A stretch of DNA of 64,000 bases from Trichosphaerium sp. ATCC 40318 (taxonomy: Eukaryota > Protista > Tubulinea): contig JALMLS010000009.1 of NCBI GenBank assembly GCA_038496445.1, positions 186,001-250,000 on the forward strand. The letters run 5' to 3'. The first letter of the stretch is position 1; every line of letters starts with the position of its first letter. Below, one piece after another: positions 1-28,487 of the stretch. The notes under the pieces were generated by a model. The model worked only from the letters and a program-made list of their open reading frames with translations, did not search any database and had not been told where the DNA came from. The position numbers were made by a program, and so were the translations under genes.

Positions 1-172
1 GCTCTCGGCTGTATTACCACTGACCGTGTCAAAACTGGCGTCTCCACTTGAATTATCTTTATTTGTAGCCATAATCACATTCTTTCATTGCATTGTAGAG
101 CAAAAAATTGACAATTTCAATGTTAGTCTCTTACAGTTTCTCAGAGTAGTTATTTCAAGTTCAACAGCCCAC

Positions 173-2240
<2,068 letters not shown>

Positions 2241-5600: not shown

Positions 5601-5955
5601 AGTGAGTTTTTTGGAATTAATAGTTGTGTTTTTTTTTTGGCTTTTATTGACTTTTTCAAAGCTCATCTGGAGATTACGAAGAAGCTATCATCAGACGAAA
5701 GAAAAAATCCAACAAAGCAGATATGGTACGTCATTAGAGTTGAAGTCCGATTCTCATCCTTTTTTGCAACAGATTGAGCTTGGAAGCATACCAACTGCAC
5801 GTGATATGAATGAAATACATGCAGACATCAGTACAAGTGATGAAGAAGATGATGAAAGTAGTAGTGATGAAGACGATGAAGATAGTGATGATGATGATGA
5901 TGATGAAGATAGTGATGATGGTCAAATAGTTGATGTTGGTCTGACGCTTATGTAA
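2623..5955 (+). CDS. Type I membrane protein with SdrD B-like (Cna-B/prealbumin-fold) repeats, one TM helix and a coiled-coil/acidic cytoplasmic tail
   Basis: Signal peptide MRGHLFMVLCLVGVITG. Three repeats start VFRDTDGSGIQDGAE, FFNDNDGDGAFN and VWDDISRNGVQEEFE. Also TTSAGSVSFTGV and SPVNQGVDESVDND. TM at about 4530-4660, Asp/Glu-rich tail. Confidence 0.7.
5838..5920 (+). repeat. (GAT/GAA)n coding microsatellite, acidic tract
   Basis: Imperfect GAT repeats encoding SDEEDDESSSDEDDEDSDDDDDDEDSDD. Confidence 0.9.
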
Positions 5956-6223: not shown

Positions 6224-9200
6224 CTACTTTTTGAAAGATTTACTCCATAGTTTCTGGTCTTTCTTTTCTTGAATACGTAAACGACAATTATGACGTTCAT
6301 AGAACCTTTTAAATACGCTGTCACTATTTTCAATATCAGGTTGTATTGTTAATGCTCGTTGGAAGTCTCTAGTTGCTTTTTCTGTTAGATTTTGCTCGCT
6401 ATAGCTAAATCCTCGTCTATATAAGGCCTAGAATTTAAAACAATCAGGAAAGACCAAGTACACCAAAGAAAAGAATTGTAAAAAGAGAAGTTGGTTTTCA
6501 GAAAAAATTGAGAAAGAAAATAATTTTTTACCTTAACGTTCTCTTCATCAAAAGAAAGGGCTTTATTACAATCTTCTATAGCAGATGTATATGATTTCAA
6601 GTATATCAAAGTCAGTGCCCTATATTAACAATAACGTGAACATGGTTTGGTAGAGTGCCGTGAAAAAAAAGAAAAGACAATTTCCATTGAAGGTTGATTA
6701 TTGTGTTGATAAAACGTGCTTTAGTAAAGCACTCAAGTTTTCATTAATAATCAATACGTCATAAAGTATGCTTGGGTTTTACAGTAAAAGTAGATTTTGA
6801 CATACCTGTTGAGGTAAACGAGATGTTTGGCTGATTCTATTTTTAGTTTCTTTTCGTCAGTTAGGTCTTGAACTATATCAAAATCGGCAAGACACTCAAT
6901 GGACTAATACATGGTTAGAAGTCTGTAAAACATACAATGATGTAAAATAATTGAAGCTATTGATTGTAGACAACAACAACCACAACAAAGCGACAGTGAT
7001 CGAAAAATAATAAAAACAAGATATATGGAAAGTGTAATATGACTTTTTGTGTTCACGTACTTCTGTGTATTTTATGTTTGCTAGCTTGAACCTCTTTCTC
7101 TTGAACAATATGTTGCCTTCAAGTCTCAAAGCACTAGATTGTTCAACACCATATTCTACGTTTACATAGTAATTCTACAATAAAAGTGTAAGTTGTCACG
7201 TTTTGAAAAAAAAAACCCTCAAAGTACCTTTCCTGAGCGACCTTTCTTCTTTTTAGGTGGAGGTGTTACGTTTTTTATTTCTATCCAAAATAGAATATCA
7301 GATTCAGGCGGTATTTTAGGTGGACAACCACATTGCTTGTAACTAATAAAACTTATCAAAAAAAGAATAAAGCAACAAAAAAAAATATGTTGAAACTCGT
7401 AAACGAAGCCAAATGACCAAAAAGAGCACTTACGCTCTGGACCAGTGACCAAGAAGAAGCAATTGTGTTCCTGCACGTAAATCAAATAATCCGTAATCCA
7501 ACATTGAAAGTACTTCGCCTTCACCAACTTTAAACTACGTAGGAATAAACAAAGAAAAATCTGAGAAAAAAAAGCAACGTTTGTGCTGTACCTTAAGATT
7601 TTCATTTCTAGCAACACTACTATCAAAAACAGTATCATTTGGGAGACGAGCCACATAATGTACTATAAAAAATAAACATCCACAGCAAATACAAAGAAAC
7701 TTCAGCCCCGAATGGACAAACTAATTAAAAAACCGACTGTTTTTTTTTTTGGAGTTAACTTACGTTCTACGCGATGCCCTCTTTCTACAATATCTCGTTT
7801 TCCTTCCTTCAATACAATTCTACGTAAAGTACCATCTCCCAAAACATCAAGGGCAGGAGTGGCTTTGTCTAACTCGTTAAACTTTGCAAACGTGTAATCT
7901 GGGGCTGAACGTTTCATGTCATCGAGCGATACTATAGCAACCTGGCAACATGAGAGTAAGTGGATGGACATTAATTGTATTAAAGTACCCCATCATCAGT
8001 AAACAAATCCTTTTCTTCCTTCACAATTTCAGGAAGATCTGATTTTTGCTGATTTTGTTTGGGAGGGTTTTTATCGTAATTTTCTTCCTTTGCTTTATTT
8101 AACTTCTCTTTGTTAATGTCTTTGCTTTCATCATCTTCGCCATCTTCTTGTTGGAAATTTTGTTGACGATTGAGCCATTTAACAACCATAAGAGCAGCAT
8201 TATGTCTAGCCTATACGAATTATTTGAAAGAAGAAATAAGAACAGCTGCAGTTCTATTCATTCACACCCATAGAAAGACCTCACGTTTTATTTTGCAAAT
8301 AAAACAATATTTTCAATGTGAGGAGATGAGAAAAAAAGCGAAGAATATGAACGTTATGAACTGTAAAGGCAAAAAAAAAACACTCAAGAAAACTTACTGT
8401 TTTCTTTCCTTGTGATGCAAAATCTGGTTGAAATTCAAAAACCTGGTCCTCTATTGTAACAATAAACCTATTCAAATACGTTAATGAATCAAATACAAAA
8501 AAGAGGTAAAATAACCTTACTTGTAAACAAATGGACCACCCTCAGGATTAGAAGGATCTTCCTCGTATCTAACATTAAATATTTCAGAAGAAGCGATCTG
8601 TTTAAACTCATTCAGAAGCTGTGATGGTGTCTTCCTATTACCCCATGTAGCAGGATCATATTTTTCAGGGAACGGATCCTCATCTTTGCTTTGAACCTAG
8701 AAACCGTTTAACACGATAAAAAGCTCCAAATCGTTCAAAGAAAGAAAAACAACAAGCTTGACGGCTTCCTTCAAGAGCTCTATGGCTCCTTGACCACAAA
8801 AGGTTGAACAATAAGTATAGTACCTTGTTCGCTTCTTTCCCCAAGTAGAGATTAGTAAAACTAAAGCTCTTGGGTTGACTCTTTTCAAGCTGTCTCATCA
8901 TCTTTGTGTAGTGGTATCTAAAATACGTTAATAAAGCATACGTTTACGTGCCTGCCTTAGTGAGCATAAATCACGTACATTTCTAAATGACGTCCTTCTT
9001 TGTTCATGGCAATAGCGTCCCCATAAATTTCGGCTTCAGTTACGCTTGTTGCTCTGAGAGAAAAAAATTAGAACTGTATTTATGGTTTAGAAGTAGTTAT
9101 ACCTTTCGTTTAACGCAAGGCCTTGCTCTTTTCCGTTTTTATTGTAATAAAGATCAGTCTCAAATCGCGTTGACATTGTAGCACCTAGAAATACCTTGTT

Positions 9201-9518
9201 AGCAAGCGAAAACGCGAATAACATGATTGAATCTACAAAAAAGACGATTCTGATTGAATATAAGTATTGTGCGTCTTGTGTACCCCATACGGTGCTGGCG
9301 CCTATTTCTTTAGCGTTTAAGAGCGCTTTCATGCTAAATGTCAATAATAAGTAAGCTTCAAGCGCAATAACTGTATACCTCTGCTCTACATGGTCTCTAA
9401 GCACAGATGCGCTGCTAATACGAACGTCCACATTGCTTGAGATAACTACAACGTGTACAGACTCATCATAATGCTCACTGTCATCTCGAGGACCGTTAAC
9501 GTCCGTTGAGTGGTCCAT
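6224..9518 (-). CDS. dsRBD + FKBP-type PPIase-like + TPR protein (start uncertain)
   Basis: Spliced TPSQLLNEFKQ...GPFVYKFIVTI...GKKTARHNAALMVVKWL (dsRBD). LHYVARLPNDTVFDSS...GCPPKIPPESDILFWIEI (FKBP). EGNILFK, YLNRALT..AIEDCNKAL..NVKALYRRG (TPR clamp). Confidence 0.75.
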
Positions 9519-9767: not shown

Positions 9768-12152
9768 CTATTCGGACGTTACAGGTTTGTAACCACTTCC
9801 AGTTTTTGACTCTGTAGCACGACGCATCAAGAACGTGTAGATCATTAATCCTATTAACGCAGTTGTACCAAAAACACCAATAAAATAACCCACAAAAACG
9901 ACATCTTTAGTTACTCCATACACACGTTCTTTCGCTATAAAACACAAAATCAGCAGTTATTATTACAAGCTACCTCCGTACCAACAAGGCAATTATCACC
10001 ACAGCTACATGCTGCATCGCAAACATCGTATTCATAACGATCTATACGTAGTCAGTACAACTGAAGAAATACGTACTACTTCGAGGGGAAAATAGTTTTT
10101 CTTCATGTTTTACGTGCCTGGTGTTACATAAACTTGAGTTGTCAAAATAATTGTATGACTATCATGTTCTAAGCGCTTAGCACCTCGCTTAGATTGATGA
10201 CGATGCTCAACAGCAACATCAAATTCAAACTCTACAAAATATGCTTGCCATCCTTTCTTGGCTGGTAAGCTTACACGATAGTGTTTAGGCTCTACAACAA
10301 GAGTTAAAAGGAATAAAAGATTTTGTAGACTACAAACTGACCTTCAGGTGTTAATTCTGTGGGTTTGTAAACGATTGATGATTCATCTGGGGTGTACTTT
10401 CTGAAATCGCGTGCATCTGGGTTGTAAGCAACCCATAAAGTTGCACGAGTAGGTACAACGTTAGTTGCTACAACAAGCTCTTTTTTACCATCTTCAGATC
10501 TTTTGATATGTTCTTCTGTAATATTAGGTGGTACTACGCGATCTACGATCACAGCATAAAAGGTAGCGATGGACAACCTTAACCGAGTTAAGCAAAGGCA
10601 GAAAAAAAAACCAAAAAAAAAAAGTTTCTTTTTGGATAGTTGTACGTACGTTATTCTCTCGTGGTACTCTGTTAGATTGTTGGCTACATTAGGTATGTAG
10701 CGAAGGAACTTTTGTCCTGTTAATTCATTGTAAAAGAATTGTGTAGAATCAGGTGGATAAAACTCGTCTTGAGCGGCATTGATAATGAACTTAGGTTGGC
10801 TAATACGGTTGTTGTACTGTAATGGATCAGTTAAGGTTATAGCTCGTAACCCCTCTTTTGTCTTTAGCCATTTCATTACGCCTTCATTTACATACTCTTC
10901 AAATGCATGACTCCAGTTTCCGTAGGTTCTATAAAACAATTAGCTTGAAGAAAACGAAATTAAGAAAGCCATTAACAAGTGACATACTGATGATGGTGAT
11001 CATGTTGCTTGATGCTATTCAAACCACAATAAGATATAGGAACCAAAGCCTTTACTCTTTTATCAGTGGCAGCGATAAGCCAAGTAGCCCTAGGTATCAA
11101 GGTTAGGATAAAGAATAAAACACGACTCAATAGCAACAAAAAAAATTATACCATCCACGAAGCGAATCACCAACAACCACAAAGTCTTTTACATGCGGTA
11201 ATTTCTCTTGAACAATTGACATTGCAGCAGTGGCAGTCCTTATCATTGGCAATTGTGCATGCTAAGGTAGTTTCATTACGGTAATTCAACCAAATATAAC
11301 AAACAAAAACAATAGACAATAAACACCATAAAACGTACCAGCTTTGGTTGTTTACTGTTATGAAAGAAATTCATCATACTCTTAGCAAACAAAGCGTCTA
11401 TAAAGTAAAGTAAGATATAATTAATAGGCATATATTTCTCGTACGTCCAGAGCGATTTCTAGGTATGGCCTCGTTTGCGAATTCTACTGGACCATTTGGC
11501 ATTTGCCAAAGTTCAATTACAGCTGCTTGAGTGTGTACAGCTAGCTTGATTCCTTCAGGACTAGCTTCATTTGGTGTATCCTCTCTATTGTAGGCATAAA
11601 CTCCAAGAGACGATTTCCAAGGTAAACGTACTTGTGCTCGTCTCCACGCAGTATGAAAATAGCAGTTTTCTCGTGATAGTAGTTCTTTGGTATCGTTCTA
11701 AACTGCGTTAAGATTTCCGTGACAAGTGTCCGTATAAGATTGATAGACGTAATGTAGGAGTTTTTTGAGCAAGTTGTACGTACACGGTCATCCAGTGTGC
11801 CCATAAATTGTTGTGGGTGATATAGTGTTGATCTAACCACAAGAAGGAGCTAAAGCGAAAAACATGCGTCGTATGTGTTTCGTACACTTTTGTATCAGCT
11901 TGAAAGCGTGAATACCTACAACGAGGTTAAATGGAATCAATATTAAATTTCAATGATTAGTAGCGCTACACTAAAGTATATGCGCAGCTGTAGAGCATTG
12001 TATACGGCTAATTTTCAAAATAGTAATACTGCAACCGTATTATTCACGTACACGTCAGACCTCAACACAGAGTACTTGTCCAAGTCACCATACTGTTTTG
12101 AACACGCAATTGCTACTAGCAGCGTTATCACTGCAACGTATTGTATAAGCAT
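9768..12152 (-). CDS. PqaA/AprA-like alpha/beta-hydrolase-fold protein with signal peptide and C-terminal TM
   Basis: VVVGDSLRGWATWLIAATDKRVKALVP, YGNWSHAFEEY, DPLQY, PKFIINAAQDEFYPPD, LRYIPN, ARDFR. C-terminal hydrophobic helix, then RRATESK...E*. Confidence 0.8.
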
Positions 12153-26566: not shown

Positions 26567-27027
26567 TCAATGCCAGTTTGTTGTTGAGTTCCTTCGTTTC
26601 ATATTTCCGGGCGTTCCAGTGTACCGAGTTGGTAGCGCTAAGGAGCTAGTTCGTTTTTGGAGCTTATGAGTAGCTGCTCTTTGTCTTATGAAGTTCTAAA
26701 AGCGCGTGGGTCAGTATATCACGTCATACGCTTGAAGGGGTTTTTAAGAAGAACAGAAATTAAATGTCTTTTGCGTACTTCACGGTACTCCCGTCTCCTT
26801 GTAGTAACCCTACTTCTGATGCAAACGCGTTCAGGTATAGCGGTAAGGCTAAGACTCATTTTATCACGTGATGGCGGAGGAGAACTAGCGTCGTAAGACT
26901 CATCACCTATTGAAGCTTCAAGCTGTTCTATTGCGATGTATAGCTCATCGTATATTGATGGCCTCTGTGCTCTTGACGCTAGTGTGCTAATGTTCTGTAG
27001 TATGTTTGTCATCATTGTAGATTCCAT
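26567..27027 (-). CDS. Hypothetical two-exon protein
   Basis: MESTMMTN... spliced at GTACGC...TTTTAG to NFIRQRAATHKLQKRTSS...NWH*. Confidence 0.5.
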
Positions 27028-27367
27028 GTTGAATTAATTTAGTTTCTGTTTTTTGAAACACGAGAGAAGTTCCACTTCAAAAAATGGAACTGAACAAATA
27101 AGATTTCTTGGCTTAATCTGTCAACTTATAGCGTGATCAAACGATACGTGAGACCGCCATAACAGACAGATTGTGTAACCGAGCTAGTGTTTGAGCGTGG
27201 TAATGGGACTTTTTTTGCGGAGATAACTCCATGACAAGCAATAGCACAATGGCTAACACAAACGGAGCTTCGAACTGTGTTTACAAACATTGGGTTTTTA
27301 CTTCTTCTCGAAAATATGACACAACCCTTTTCTGATTTTCTTTAGATTGTCCCTTATCGAAAAGAGT

Positions 27368-28487
27368 TTACATACAAGCTAATCCGCCACTTACTGTCAA
27401 TGAAGCTCCTGTTGTGAAAGACGCTTCATCGCTCAATAAAAATATGACTGTCTTTACAACATCTTCTGGTTCGCCAATTCGCTTCATTGGTGACAGCTCT
27501 GTTATACGTCTTTCCTACAAAATATTGTATAAACATGGAAAGTGTTAAACTTATGTATACATACGAATGCAGCTTGTGCTTTAGGTGTATTGTTTGTATT
27601 GATTATGGGTGTTCTTATAAAGGATGGACAAACTGCGTTTATTCTTGAGAAAAACCCAATGTCAGCTACTGTAAAAACCAGCTAATGGCACGCACCGTAT
27701 ACCTCTGGTTGCATATTCCATTGCGGCTCCTTTCGTCATACCAATGACAGCATGTTTGGATGCCACATAAGCGGTGTTACGTCTTTATAAAAGTAAGATA
27801 TCGTGAGTTAGACTGAAACATGAAAAAAAAACCCAAAAAAGCTGGCACGCGCCAGCCCGCGTGACATACTTGAATGGTCCTAAGCCTGCAAGTGATGACA
27901 TGTTTACAATGGAATATCCTTTGCCACCTTGCTTTATCATTTGCTTGGTTTCATATTTCATGCCTAAAAACACACTGCGCGTGTTAACTGCCATCTAGAG
28001 AACGTGTAAATAAGTACACCACGAAAAAAGTGCCTCTCAAAAGCGGAATGAACAATTTTGGAAGTAGCTAGTTGGGAAATTGCCGTTTACCTTTACGAAC
28101 GGCTGTTGTAGCGTACCACTTTATCGTATGTGTCTGTGGGGTAGTCTTGAATGTCATACCAAGCGCCAGCAATACCAGCGTTATTAAACGCCATATCTAT
28201 ACGACCGTAGCGTTTAACTGCGCTGTCAACCATTCCTTTCACCTCTGACTCATTCGCGACGTTCAGTTTATAAAAATACGCTTCTCCGCCTTGTTATAAC
28301 GTTAGCACGCTCAACGCAAAAGCGTACCATTATTTTTGATTATATCAACCGTTTCTAGGGCTCCCTCTTCATTAATATCTCCAACAACTACTTTAGCGCC
28401 TTCCTTTGCACATGCTATTGCCGTAGCTCTTCCAATACCGGATGCTCCTCCCGTAAGAAGTAATACCTTATCCTTAAAACGAGCCAT
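27368..28487 (-). CDS. Short-chain dehydrogenase/reductase (classical SDR)
   Basis: [23 protein letters not shown] catalytic motif, [17 protein letters not shown]. Confidence 0.93.

Follow-up and report, generated by a model that had tools for sequence, protein, structure and literature searches.

It is not yet clear by what means Hsp90, with its immunophilin co-chaperones, locates the proper Argonaute-RNA client, and a gene of the amoebozoan Trichosphaerium sp. ATCC 40318 raises the question in a concrete form: could a single protein chain both hold double-stranded RNA (dsRNA) and recruit the chaperone? The gene lies on the minus strand of a 64,000-nucleotide (nt) stretch of genomic DNA (contig JALMLS010000009.1, positions 186,001 to 250,000; hereafter the window, whose numbering is used below), and its whole coding span, 6224..9518, coincides exactly with the span flagged in a preliminary description of this DNA. 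That description took the product for an adaptor that loads the RNA-induced silencing complex (RISC), with a dsRNA-binding domain (dsRBD) placed ahead of an FKBP domain and a TPR clamp. FKBP-TPR co-chaperones, namely Shutdown/FKBP6 and Coi12p, are needed for small-RNA loading (PMC3463805, PMC4331008). We find that an N-terminal extension, a dsRBD-like segment, an FKBP domain and a TPR domain very probably do stand in one chain, as had been proposed, with a transcript continuous from exon 4, FKBP and TPR domains matched in domain searches, and a middle segment that resembles a dsRBD. What is new is an RNA-binding-type extension on an otherwise known FKBP-TPR immunophilin.

The host genome (70 Mb) is intron-rich and AT-rich, with a GC content of about 0.36, and our exon model was assembled from the three minus-strand frames and GT..AG boundaries. 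It gives one gene of 16 exons that sum to 1875 nt, or 625 codons, with the frame open throughout, all phases closing, and a stop codon at 6226-6224. Most of the model could be compared with RNA from a small public run of 2015 (run X1; 13 million letters, stored as contigs). Three X1 contigs match the exons at 100% identity with the introns missing, and they are therefore cDNA. Eleven introns are seen directly in them, covering all junctions from 4/5 to 15/16 except 5/6, and each ends in CT..AC on the plus strand, which is GT..AG on the gene strand; junction 5/6 is given by a 16-nt loose contig end equal to window 8679-8694. The longest stretch of direct evidence is a 1158-nt contig that begins at 8139 inside exon 8, runs through exons 9-16 and reaches 6186 in the 3' untranslated region (UTR), which is thus at least 38 nt long. 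A second contig links part of exon 6 with exons 7 and 8; according to the depth table, it extends to about 8121 and overlaps the first by about 19 nt within the uninterrupted exon 8. The third joins exon 4 (9053-8979) to exon 5 (8917-8824), including the junction 8979/8917, and continues into the first 16 nt of exon 6. The segment at 8170-8640, on which the claim of a single transcript had turned, is spliced on both sides in these contigs, and the GKKT/ARHNAA motif does form across a splice junction (8398/8210), as a contig skips exactly that 187-nt intron.

The transcript is thus very probably continuous from exon 4 to the 3' UTR, tying the dsRBD-like exons to the FKBP-TPR exons, with a contig break remaining. 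That break is what might speak for an artefact of the gene model, in which a neighbouring N-terminal/dsRBD gene and an FKBP-TPR gene had been merged into one: the RNA support consists of three contigs rather than one, coverage is missing for about 83 nt inside exon 6 and for most of exon 4, and exons 1-3, upstream of about 9020, have zero RNA coverage in X1. The gap inside exon 6 and the bare exons 1-3 count against a single gene. However, the exon 6-7-8 contig and the exon 8-16 contig overlap inside exon 8, exon 5 is spliced onto the exon 6 acceptor, the open frame continues without a break and adds up to whole codons, and between the parts there is neither a stop nor room for a promoter. We consider such an artefact very improbable, and the reading as two separate genes was rejected on the spliced, overlapping contigs and the open frame.

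The C-terminal half of the protein is the part most readily recognised. All domain searches were run exon by exon. A TPR domain of three repeats, of the kind found in Hsp70/Hsp90 co-chaperones, is predicted in exons 13-16 (6335..7174; exon 13, 7174-7061; exon 14, 6903-6806; exon 15, 6619-6532; exon 16, 6427-6227), followed in the same reading frame by a basic C-terminal tail (6334-6227). Pfam TPR_1 matches exon 16 with E 8.9e-7 and 28.9 bits, above the cut-off of 27.8 bits, and exon 15 with E 1.8e-4; the first repeat (exons 13/14) was recognised by eye only, and with it the three TPR motifs expected of an Hsp70/Hsp90 co-chaperone are present. Among solved structures, nearly all matches to exon 15 are Hsp70/Hsp90 co-chaperones (SPAG1, STI1, CNS1, FKBP4, FKBP5, SGTA and CHIP). 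The best solved match to exon 16 is CTPR390, a consensus TPR re-engineered for binding to the tail of Hsp90, with E 4.6e-6 versus E 0.041 for plain CTPR3. In such clamps the residues K-N-N-K-R hold the EEVD carboxylates. Compared by eye with Scheufler et al. 2000 (cited through PMC3463805), the putative clamp positions here give R-N-N-K-R, from R(LEGN)-N, N(YLNRA) and K-R(VK/ALYRRG), so that the first residue is Arg instead of Lys, a substitution that weighs somewhat against a working clamp. Judged from these matches, the predicted TPR domain is real, and the earlier claim of a TPR domain holds, with the clamp as a prediction by eye.

Upstream of the TPR repeats lies a single predicted FKBP domain, at about 7839-7267 within exons 9-12 (7228..7941), running from GDGTL to WIEIKNV. 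Exon 10 alone (7662-7592) matches Pfam FKBP_C (PF00254) with E 0.016; in a genome-wide six-frame scan it scored 16.8 bits, and 25.7 bits when summed with its neighbours, exceeding the cut-off of 21.1 bits and placing the domain in the FKBP family, as the preliminary description had it. Exon 10 aligns to FKBP1A residues 26-46 in solved FKBP12-type chains (HY..L.D..FDSS..R). Exon 12 (7342-7228), which carries GCPPKIPP at 7329-7306, finds as its best solved match the FK domain of human FKBP6 (3b7x, E 0.021; GCPPLIPP versus GCPPKIPP), followed by FKBP4 (E 0.13), and it retains both the canonical G.PP.IPP..L.F.IE block and the pocket positions Y...PP.IPP..L.F. A point against a fully canonical domain is exon 11 (7534-7434), which contains the 50s loop and Trp59 region: it found no solved FKBP match in the structure search, and by eye the expected Trp is replaced by Leu. 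We read the FKBP domain as real and as partly diverged, in exon 11, with exons 10 and 12 canonical. The word "degenerate" used for it earlier fits exon 11 and overstates the case for exons 10 and 12, which keep the canonical blocks. Together with the TPR exons and the basic tail, the single FKBP domain (which begins in exon 9, 7941-7764) gives the C-terminal half the predicted layout of a large-immunophilin-type Hsp90/Hsp70 co-chaperone.

The middle of the protein is the part on which any link to RNA depends. The probable dsRBD spans aa (amino acids) about 170-245 and is split over three exons. Exon 6 (8521..8696, reading 8696-8521) encodes a linker, the putative helix 1 PSQLLNEFKQIA (8627-8592, with PSQLLNEF at 8627-8604), strand 1 and a GGP loop. 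Exon 7 (8467-8398), with both its junctions seen in a contig, encodes the putative strands 2-3, FIVTIEDQVFEF, and ends in GKKT (8409-8398), the start of the KKxA motif. Exon 8 (8210-7989) completes it with the putative helix 2, ARHNAALMVVKWLNR (8210-8166, with ARHNAA at 8210-8193), and continues into a linker of about 60 aa that is acidic and rich in lysine. The motifs quoted in the preliminary description, PSQLLNEF, GKKT/ARHNAA and GCPPKIPP, are all on the minus strand where it had put them. Their order and spacing fit a dsRBD, from PSQLLNEFKQIA through the GGP loop and FIVTIEDQVFEF to GKKT and ARHNAALMVVKWL across the confirmed junction. A dsRBD has alpha-beta-beta-beta-alpha topology within about 65-75 residues, and RNA is contacted through a Glu in helix 1, a GPxH loop and the KKxAK that starts helix 2. 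Read from the sequence, this segment has the Glu in helix 1 (LLNEF), KKTAR-HNAA, a GGPF loop without His, and a Glu-to-KK spacing of about 50 residues, close to the canonical one. If the segment is a dsRBD, then, two of the three canonical RNA-contact regions appear to be kept and one is altered.

Comparison with other dsRBDs of the same genome gave a graded result. A profile, A1, was built as an alignment of five dsRBDs found in the host genome by the scan with Pfam dsrm (PF00035), and each of the 16 exon pieces was aligned to it with hhalign, the 13 pieces outside exons 6-8 serving as negative controls. The matches of the three pieces are weak and colinear, on helix 1, strands 2-3 and helix 2 of A1 respectively: residues 26-33 of exon 6 fall on positions 3-10 (P 0.086; 48/250 shuffles reach the score), residues 1-11 of exon 7 on positions 33-43 (P 0.03; 8/250) and residues 1-15 of exon 8 on positions 53-67 (P 9e-4; 0/250). 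Exons 8 and 7 have the two best P values among all 16 pieces, and the sole other low P, for exon 12 among the controls, rests in the full profile on a single aligned column. By blastp, 7/12 residues of exon 8 are identical to helix 2 of the dsRBD at locus L004, and exon 7 shares 9/22 residues with the L002 dsRBD at the corresponding place. A local HMM from 5 sequences gave 1-3 bits per piece, and homologue searches with the dsRBDs of L002, L003 and L004, made for a deeper profile, found nothing. AF2 run on exon 6 alone placed a helix at residues 24-35 (pLDDT about 80), exactly on PSQLLNEFKQIA, and no strands.

These results have to be weighed against the possibility that the middle segment is no dsRBD at all, and that the gene encodes an ordinary FKBP-TPR co-chaperone whose N-terminal extension evolves fast, is largely disordered or novel, and carries the motifs by chance. 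Several observations favour that view and count against a dsRBD. Pfam dsrm (cut-off 23 bits) had no match on exons 6, 7 and 8 each taken apart, and the genome-wide six-frame dsrm scan found 15 places elsewhere and none in this gene. A phmmer search against solved structures left the pieces from exon 6, exon 7 and the start of exon 8 unmatched, as did the ESM Atlas for the exon 6 piece. The exon 6 match to A1, taken alone, is no better than chance, and the exon 8 match falls to P 0.062 without the L004 row, which shares KK.A.HNAAL; the loop histidine of GPxH is missing. Searches for relatives of exon 6 were equally silent: phmmer against 1.84 billion representative proteins (a library without the window's own protein) returned one spurious repeat protein, P0001, and no homologue, for a 58-residue query with which only close orthologues are detectable, and a metagenome scan returned nothing. 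Viral scans with exon 6 and with the N-terminal open reading frame (ORF) also found nothing, and exon 6 is single-copy in the genome. As no homologue of exon 6 was found, there is no evidence from conservation either for or against the fusion. Yet silence in the libraries is expected and proves little, because the domain of some 70 aa is cut into about 36 + 23 + 15 residues, which is enough to hide it from Pfam, and chance motifs would leave unexplained why the three pieces fit the right A1 segments in order when the 13 other pieces do not, why AF2 puts a helix at the expected place of helix 1, and why the Glu-to-KK spacing is so near the canonical one. A segment other than a dsRBD therefore seems to us doubtful, though a serious contender, and we think it probable that the middle segment folds as a dsRBD. 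The earlier identification of a dsRBD thus keeps its motifs, their order and a weak match to A1, with no dsrm hit on the exon pieces.

Granting a dsRBD, what might the protein do? The mechanism that we infer begins with its two ends. The TPR domain would dock on the EEVD tail of Hsp90 or Hsp70, and the dsRBD would anchor the chain to an RNA duplex or to a dsRBD-binding partner, for example a Dicer-type enzyme; the chaperone would thereby be brought to a dsRNA-containing ribonucleoprotein client, with Argonaute/Piwi loading as one candidate among others. Put in this general form, as a co-chaperone of Hsp90/Hsp70 anchored to dsRNA or to a partner that binds dsRBDs, the mechanism is one towards which we lean slightly. 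The narrower proposal of the preliminary description was a dedicated single-chain adaptor, in which the dsRBD would bind the small-RNA duplex and the FKBP-TPR part would recruit Hsp90 to open Argonaute/Piwi, so that one protein would replace an R2D2/Loqs/TRBP-type partner plus a co-chaperone. The genome holds Piwi-domain genes and several RNase III/Dicer-type genes, and a small-RNA pathway that such a protein could serve therefore exists. The FKBP-TPR proteins Shutdown/FKBP6 (PMC3463805) and Coi12p (PMC4331008) do this job, Tetrahymena is without an obvious R2D2 homologue and leaves duplex recognition open (PMC4331008), and exon 12 is nearest to FKBP6 among solved structures. However, nothing here ties the gene, which is known from its sequence and the X1 contigs, to Argonaute. 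The dsRBD fold is itself no more than probable, dsrm being silent, and other dsRNA-linked Hsp90 clients are equally possible. Known RISC loaders carry two or three dsRBDs, but this protein has only one dsRBD-like segment, its N-terminal pieces showing no likeness to A1. By analogy with the known systems, we regard the dedicated RISC-loading adaptor as unlikely, and its strongest form, an amoebozoan "Rosetta stone" fusion that by itself loads small-RNA duplexes into Argonaute/Piwi, as quite unlikely.

Comparison with characterised proteins shows what is shared and what sets the gene apart; a literature search for a described architecture with dsrm plus FKBP_C found none. FKBP6 of mouse and human and Shutdown of Drosophila have, like the present protein, one FKBP followed by an Hsp90-type TPR, and clamp residues of which the TPR here, as read by eye, seems to keep most are needed for Shutdown function (PMC3463805). 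They differ in being without a dsRBD and without the 300-aa N-terminal extension, and they are animal Piwi-interacting RNA (piRNA) factors, whereas this gene is amoebal and is likened to them by layout and by the exon 12 match. Coi12p, an Hsp90 co-chaperone with FKBP and TPR domains from the protist Tetrahymena, promotes the loading of small interfering RNA (siRNA) duplexes into Argonaute; its FK domains are poorly conserved, the paper describing it calls the way duplexes are recognised unclear (PMC4331008), and the FKBP of the present gene is likewise partly diverged. Where the present protein has one FK domain and a probable dsRBD, Coi12p carries two FK domains and lacks an RNA-binding domain. 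The TPR exons match the Hsp70/Hsp90 co-chaperones FKBP51/FKBP52 (FKBP5/FKBP4), Cyp40, STI1/Hop, CHIP and SPAG1, and FKBP4 is matched by the FKBP exons too; FKBP4/5 carry a pair of FK domains rather than one, and none of this group has a dsRBD.

Other proteins offer precedents for joining such activities. The N-terminal module of FKBP25 (FKBP3) binds dsRNA (PMC5714180), a precedent for a dsRNA-tethered prolyl isomerase, although that module is a basic tilted helix bundle and not a dsRBD, and FKBP25 is without a TPR and without a link to Hsp90. In RPAP3, of R2TP, TPR1 binds the third dsRBD of TRBP (PMC8887487), so that a co-chaperone TPR and a dsRBD cooperate much as proposed here; there each domain belongs to a protein of its own, with a dsRBD of the non-RNA-binding type B, while in the present gene they share one chain with the FKBP domain between them. 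R2D2, Loquacious and TRBP/PACT, which bind Dicer and the small-RNA duplex, have tandem dsRBDs, in contrast to the one dsRBD-like segment found here.

The N-terminal 300 aa, which form a lineage-specific extension, fall into three parts: aa 1-147, the probable dsRBD, and the flexible acidic/basic linker of about 60 aa. The first of these is encoded by exons 1-3 (9103..9518; exon 1, 9518-9379; exon 2, 9333-9284; exon 3, 9184-9103), which form one open frame, and by exons 4-5 (8824..9053), whose stretch at aa about 92-147 has no Pfam match. The start ATG at 9518 is the first in the gene's open frame. A gene of the PhoPQ-activated pathogenicity-related family (PF10142, E 1.4e-33) lies upstream on the same strand at 9768-10939 (-), and since its last open frame ends at 9768, the start of the present gene must fall within the 250 nt that separate 9768 from 9518; about 250 nt are left for the 3' end of the PhoPQ_related gene plus the promoter. 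Three candidate introns interrupt the beginning of the gene, at 9378-9334 (45 nt, in frame, GC 0.31), 9283-9185 (99 nt, in frame, GC 0.34) and 9102-9054 (49 nt, GC 0.27), and the flanking exons have GC contents of 0.47, 0.50 and 0.39. All three start with GTA, as all the confirmed introns do. The 45-nt and 99-nt introns are probably real, because they have a lower GC content than the flanking exons and the GTA start of confirmed introns; if both of these in-frame introns, which lie in the first 416 nt and have no RNA support, were retained, the protein would have 673 aa.

Candidate folds for this region were tried and rejected. A ubiquitin-like N-terminus (Sde2_N_Ubi, E 0.0099, below the cut-off) requires read-through of a probable intron, a histone fold (H2B, E 0.57) requires read-through of the first probable intron, and we regard both as noise. 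A degenerate first dsRBD in exons 1-5 was dismissed on its hhalign comparison with A1 (P 0.15-0.65). The AF2 single-sequence model of the read-through N-terminal ORF is poor (pLDDT 59), the ESM Atlas places this ORF in unnamed clusters only, and no paralogue of it was found in the genome, where it is single-copy. The additional N-terminal domain announced earlier thus comes down to an open reading frame that is present, to which Pfam, the Atlas and AF2 assign no recognised fold and over which no RNA is seen above about 9020.

The surroundings of the gene and the rest of the genome supply further observations. On the other side, a convergent neighbour at 5602-5955 (+) ends in a long Asp/Glu/Ser-rich tail (DEEDDESSSDEDDEDSDDDDDDEDSDD), with about 270 nt between the two stop codons. 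At 26-774 (+) of the window, 5 kb from the gene, lie exons of a RuvB-like/TIP49 AAA+ ATPase (TIP49 domain, E 1.8e-23). TIP49 proteins belong to the R2TP Hsp90 co-chaperone; their proximity here is probably a coincidence. Elsewhere in the genome, two adjacent FKBP_C domains (116 and 56.5 bits) at G000:C105:42004-42801 (-) probably represent a canonical two-FK (FKBP51/52-like) immunophilin separate from the present gene.

As for dsRBDs, a second gene, this one with a clear domain (dsrm, 32.9 bits), is at L004 1360-2440 (G000:C128, about 26613-27693), and the helix 2 it encodes, KKMAQHNAALAVL, comes closest to the putative helix 2 of the present gene. Downstream of the L004 dsRBD are open frames with weak TPR matches (TPR_19, E 4.3e-4; TPR_8, E 0.027), and that gene may encode another dsRBD-plus-TPR protein. 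A pair of dsrm matches at G000:C14:463640-463879 (-) and G000:C14:505026-505265 (+), scoring 19.5 and 19.4 bits, 41 kb apart and in opposite orientation, suggests that a segment with a dsRBD gene was duplicated in inverted form. Shuffling of dsRBD domains seems common in this genome, and a fusion alone says little about a pathway.

The significance of the gene depends on which reading proves right. Should the middle segment not be a dsRBD, the protein would be an ordinary immunophilin with a lineage-specific extension. If the dsRBD/FKBP-TPR fusion is true, it would form a direct physical link from duplex binding to chaperone recruitment, one that is testable, and it would fit the contact made in trans between RPAP3 and TRBP in human cells (PMC8887487). 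A fusion that did act as a loader would show that the step served by dsRBD partners is also the one served by immunophilin co-chaperones. With a genuine dsRBD and some other client, the gene would still offer an uncommon example of an Hsp90 co-chaperone tethered to RNA.

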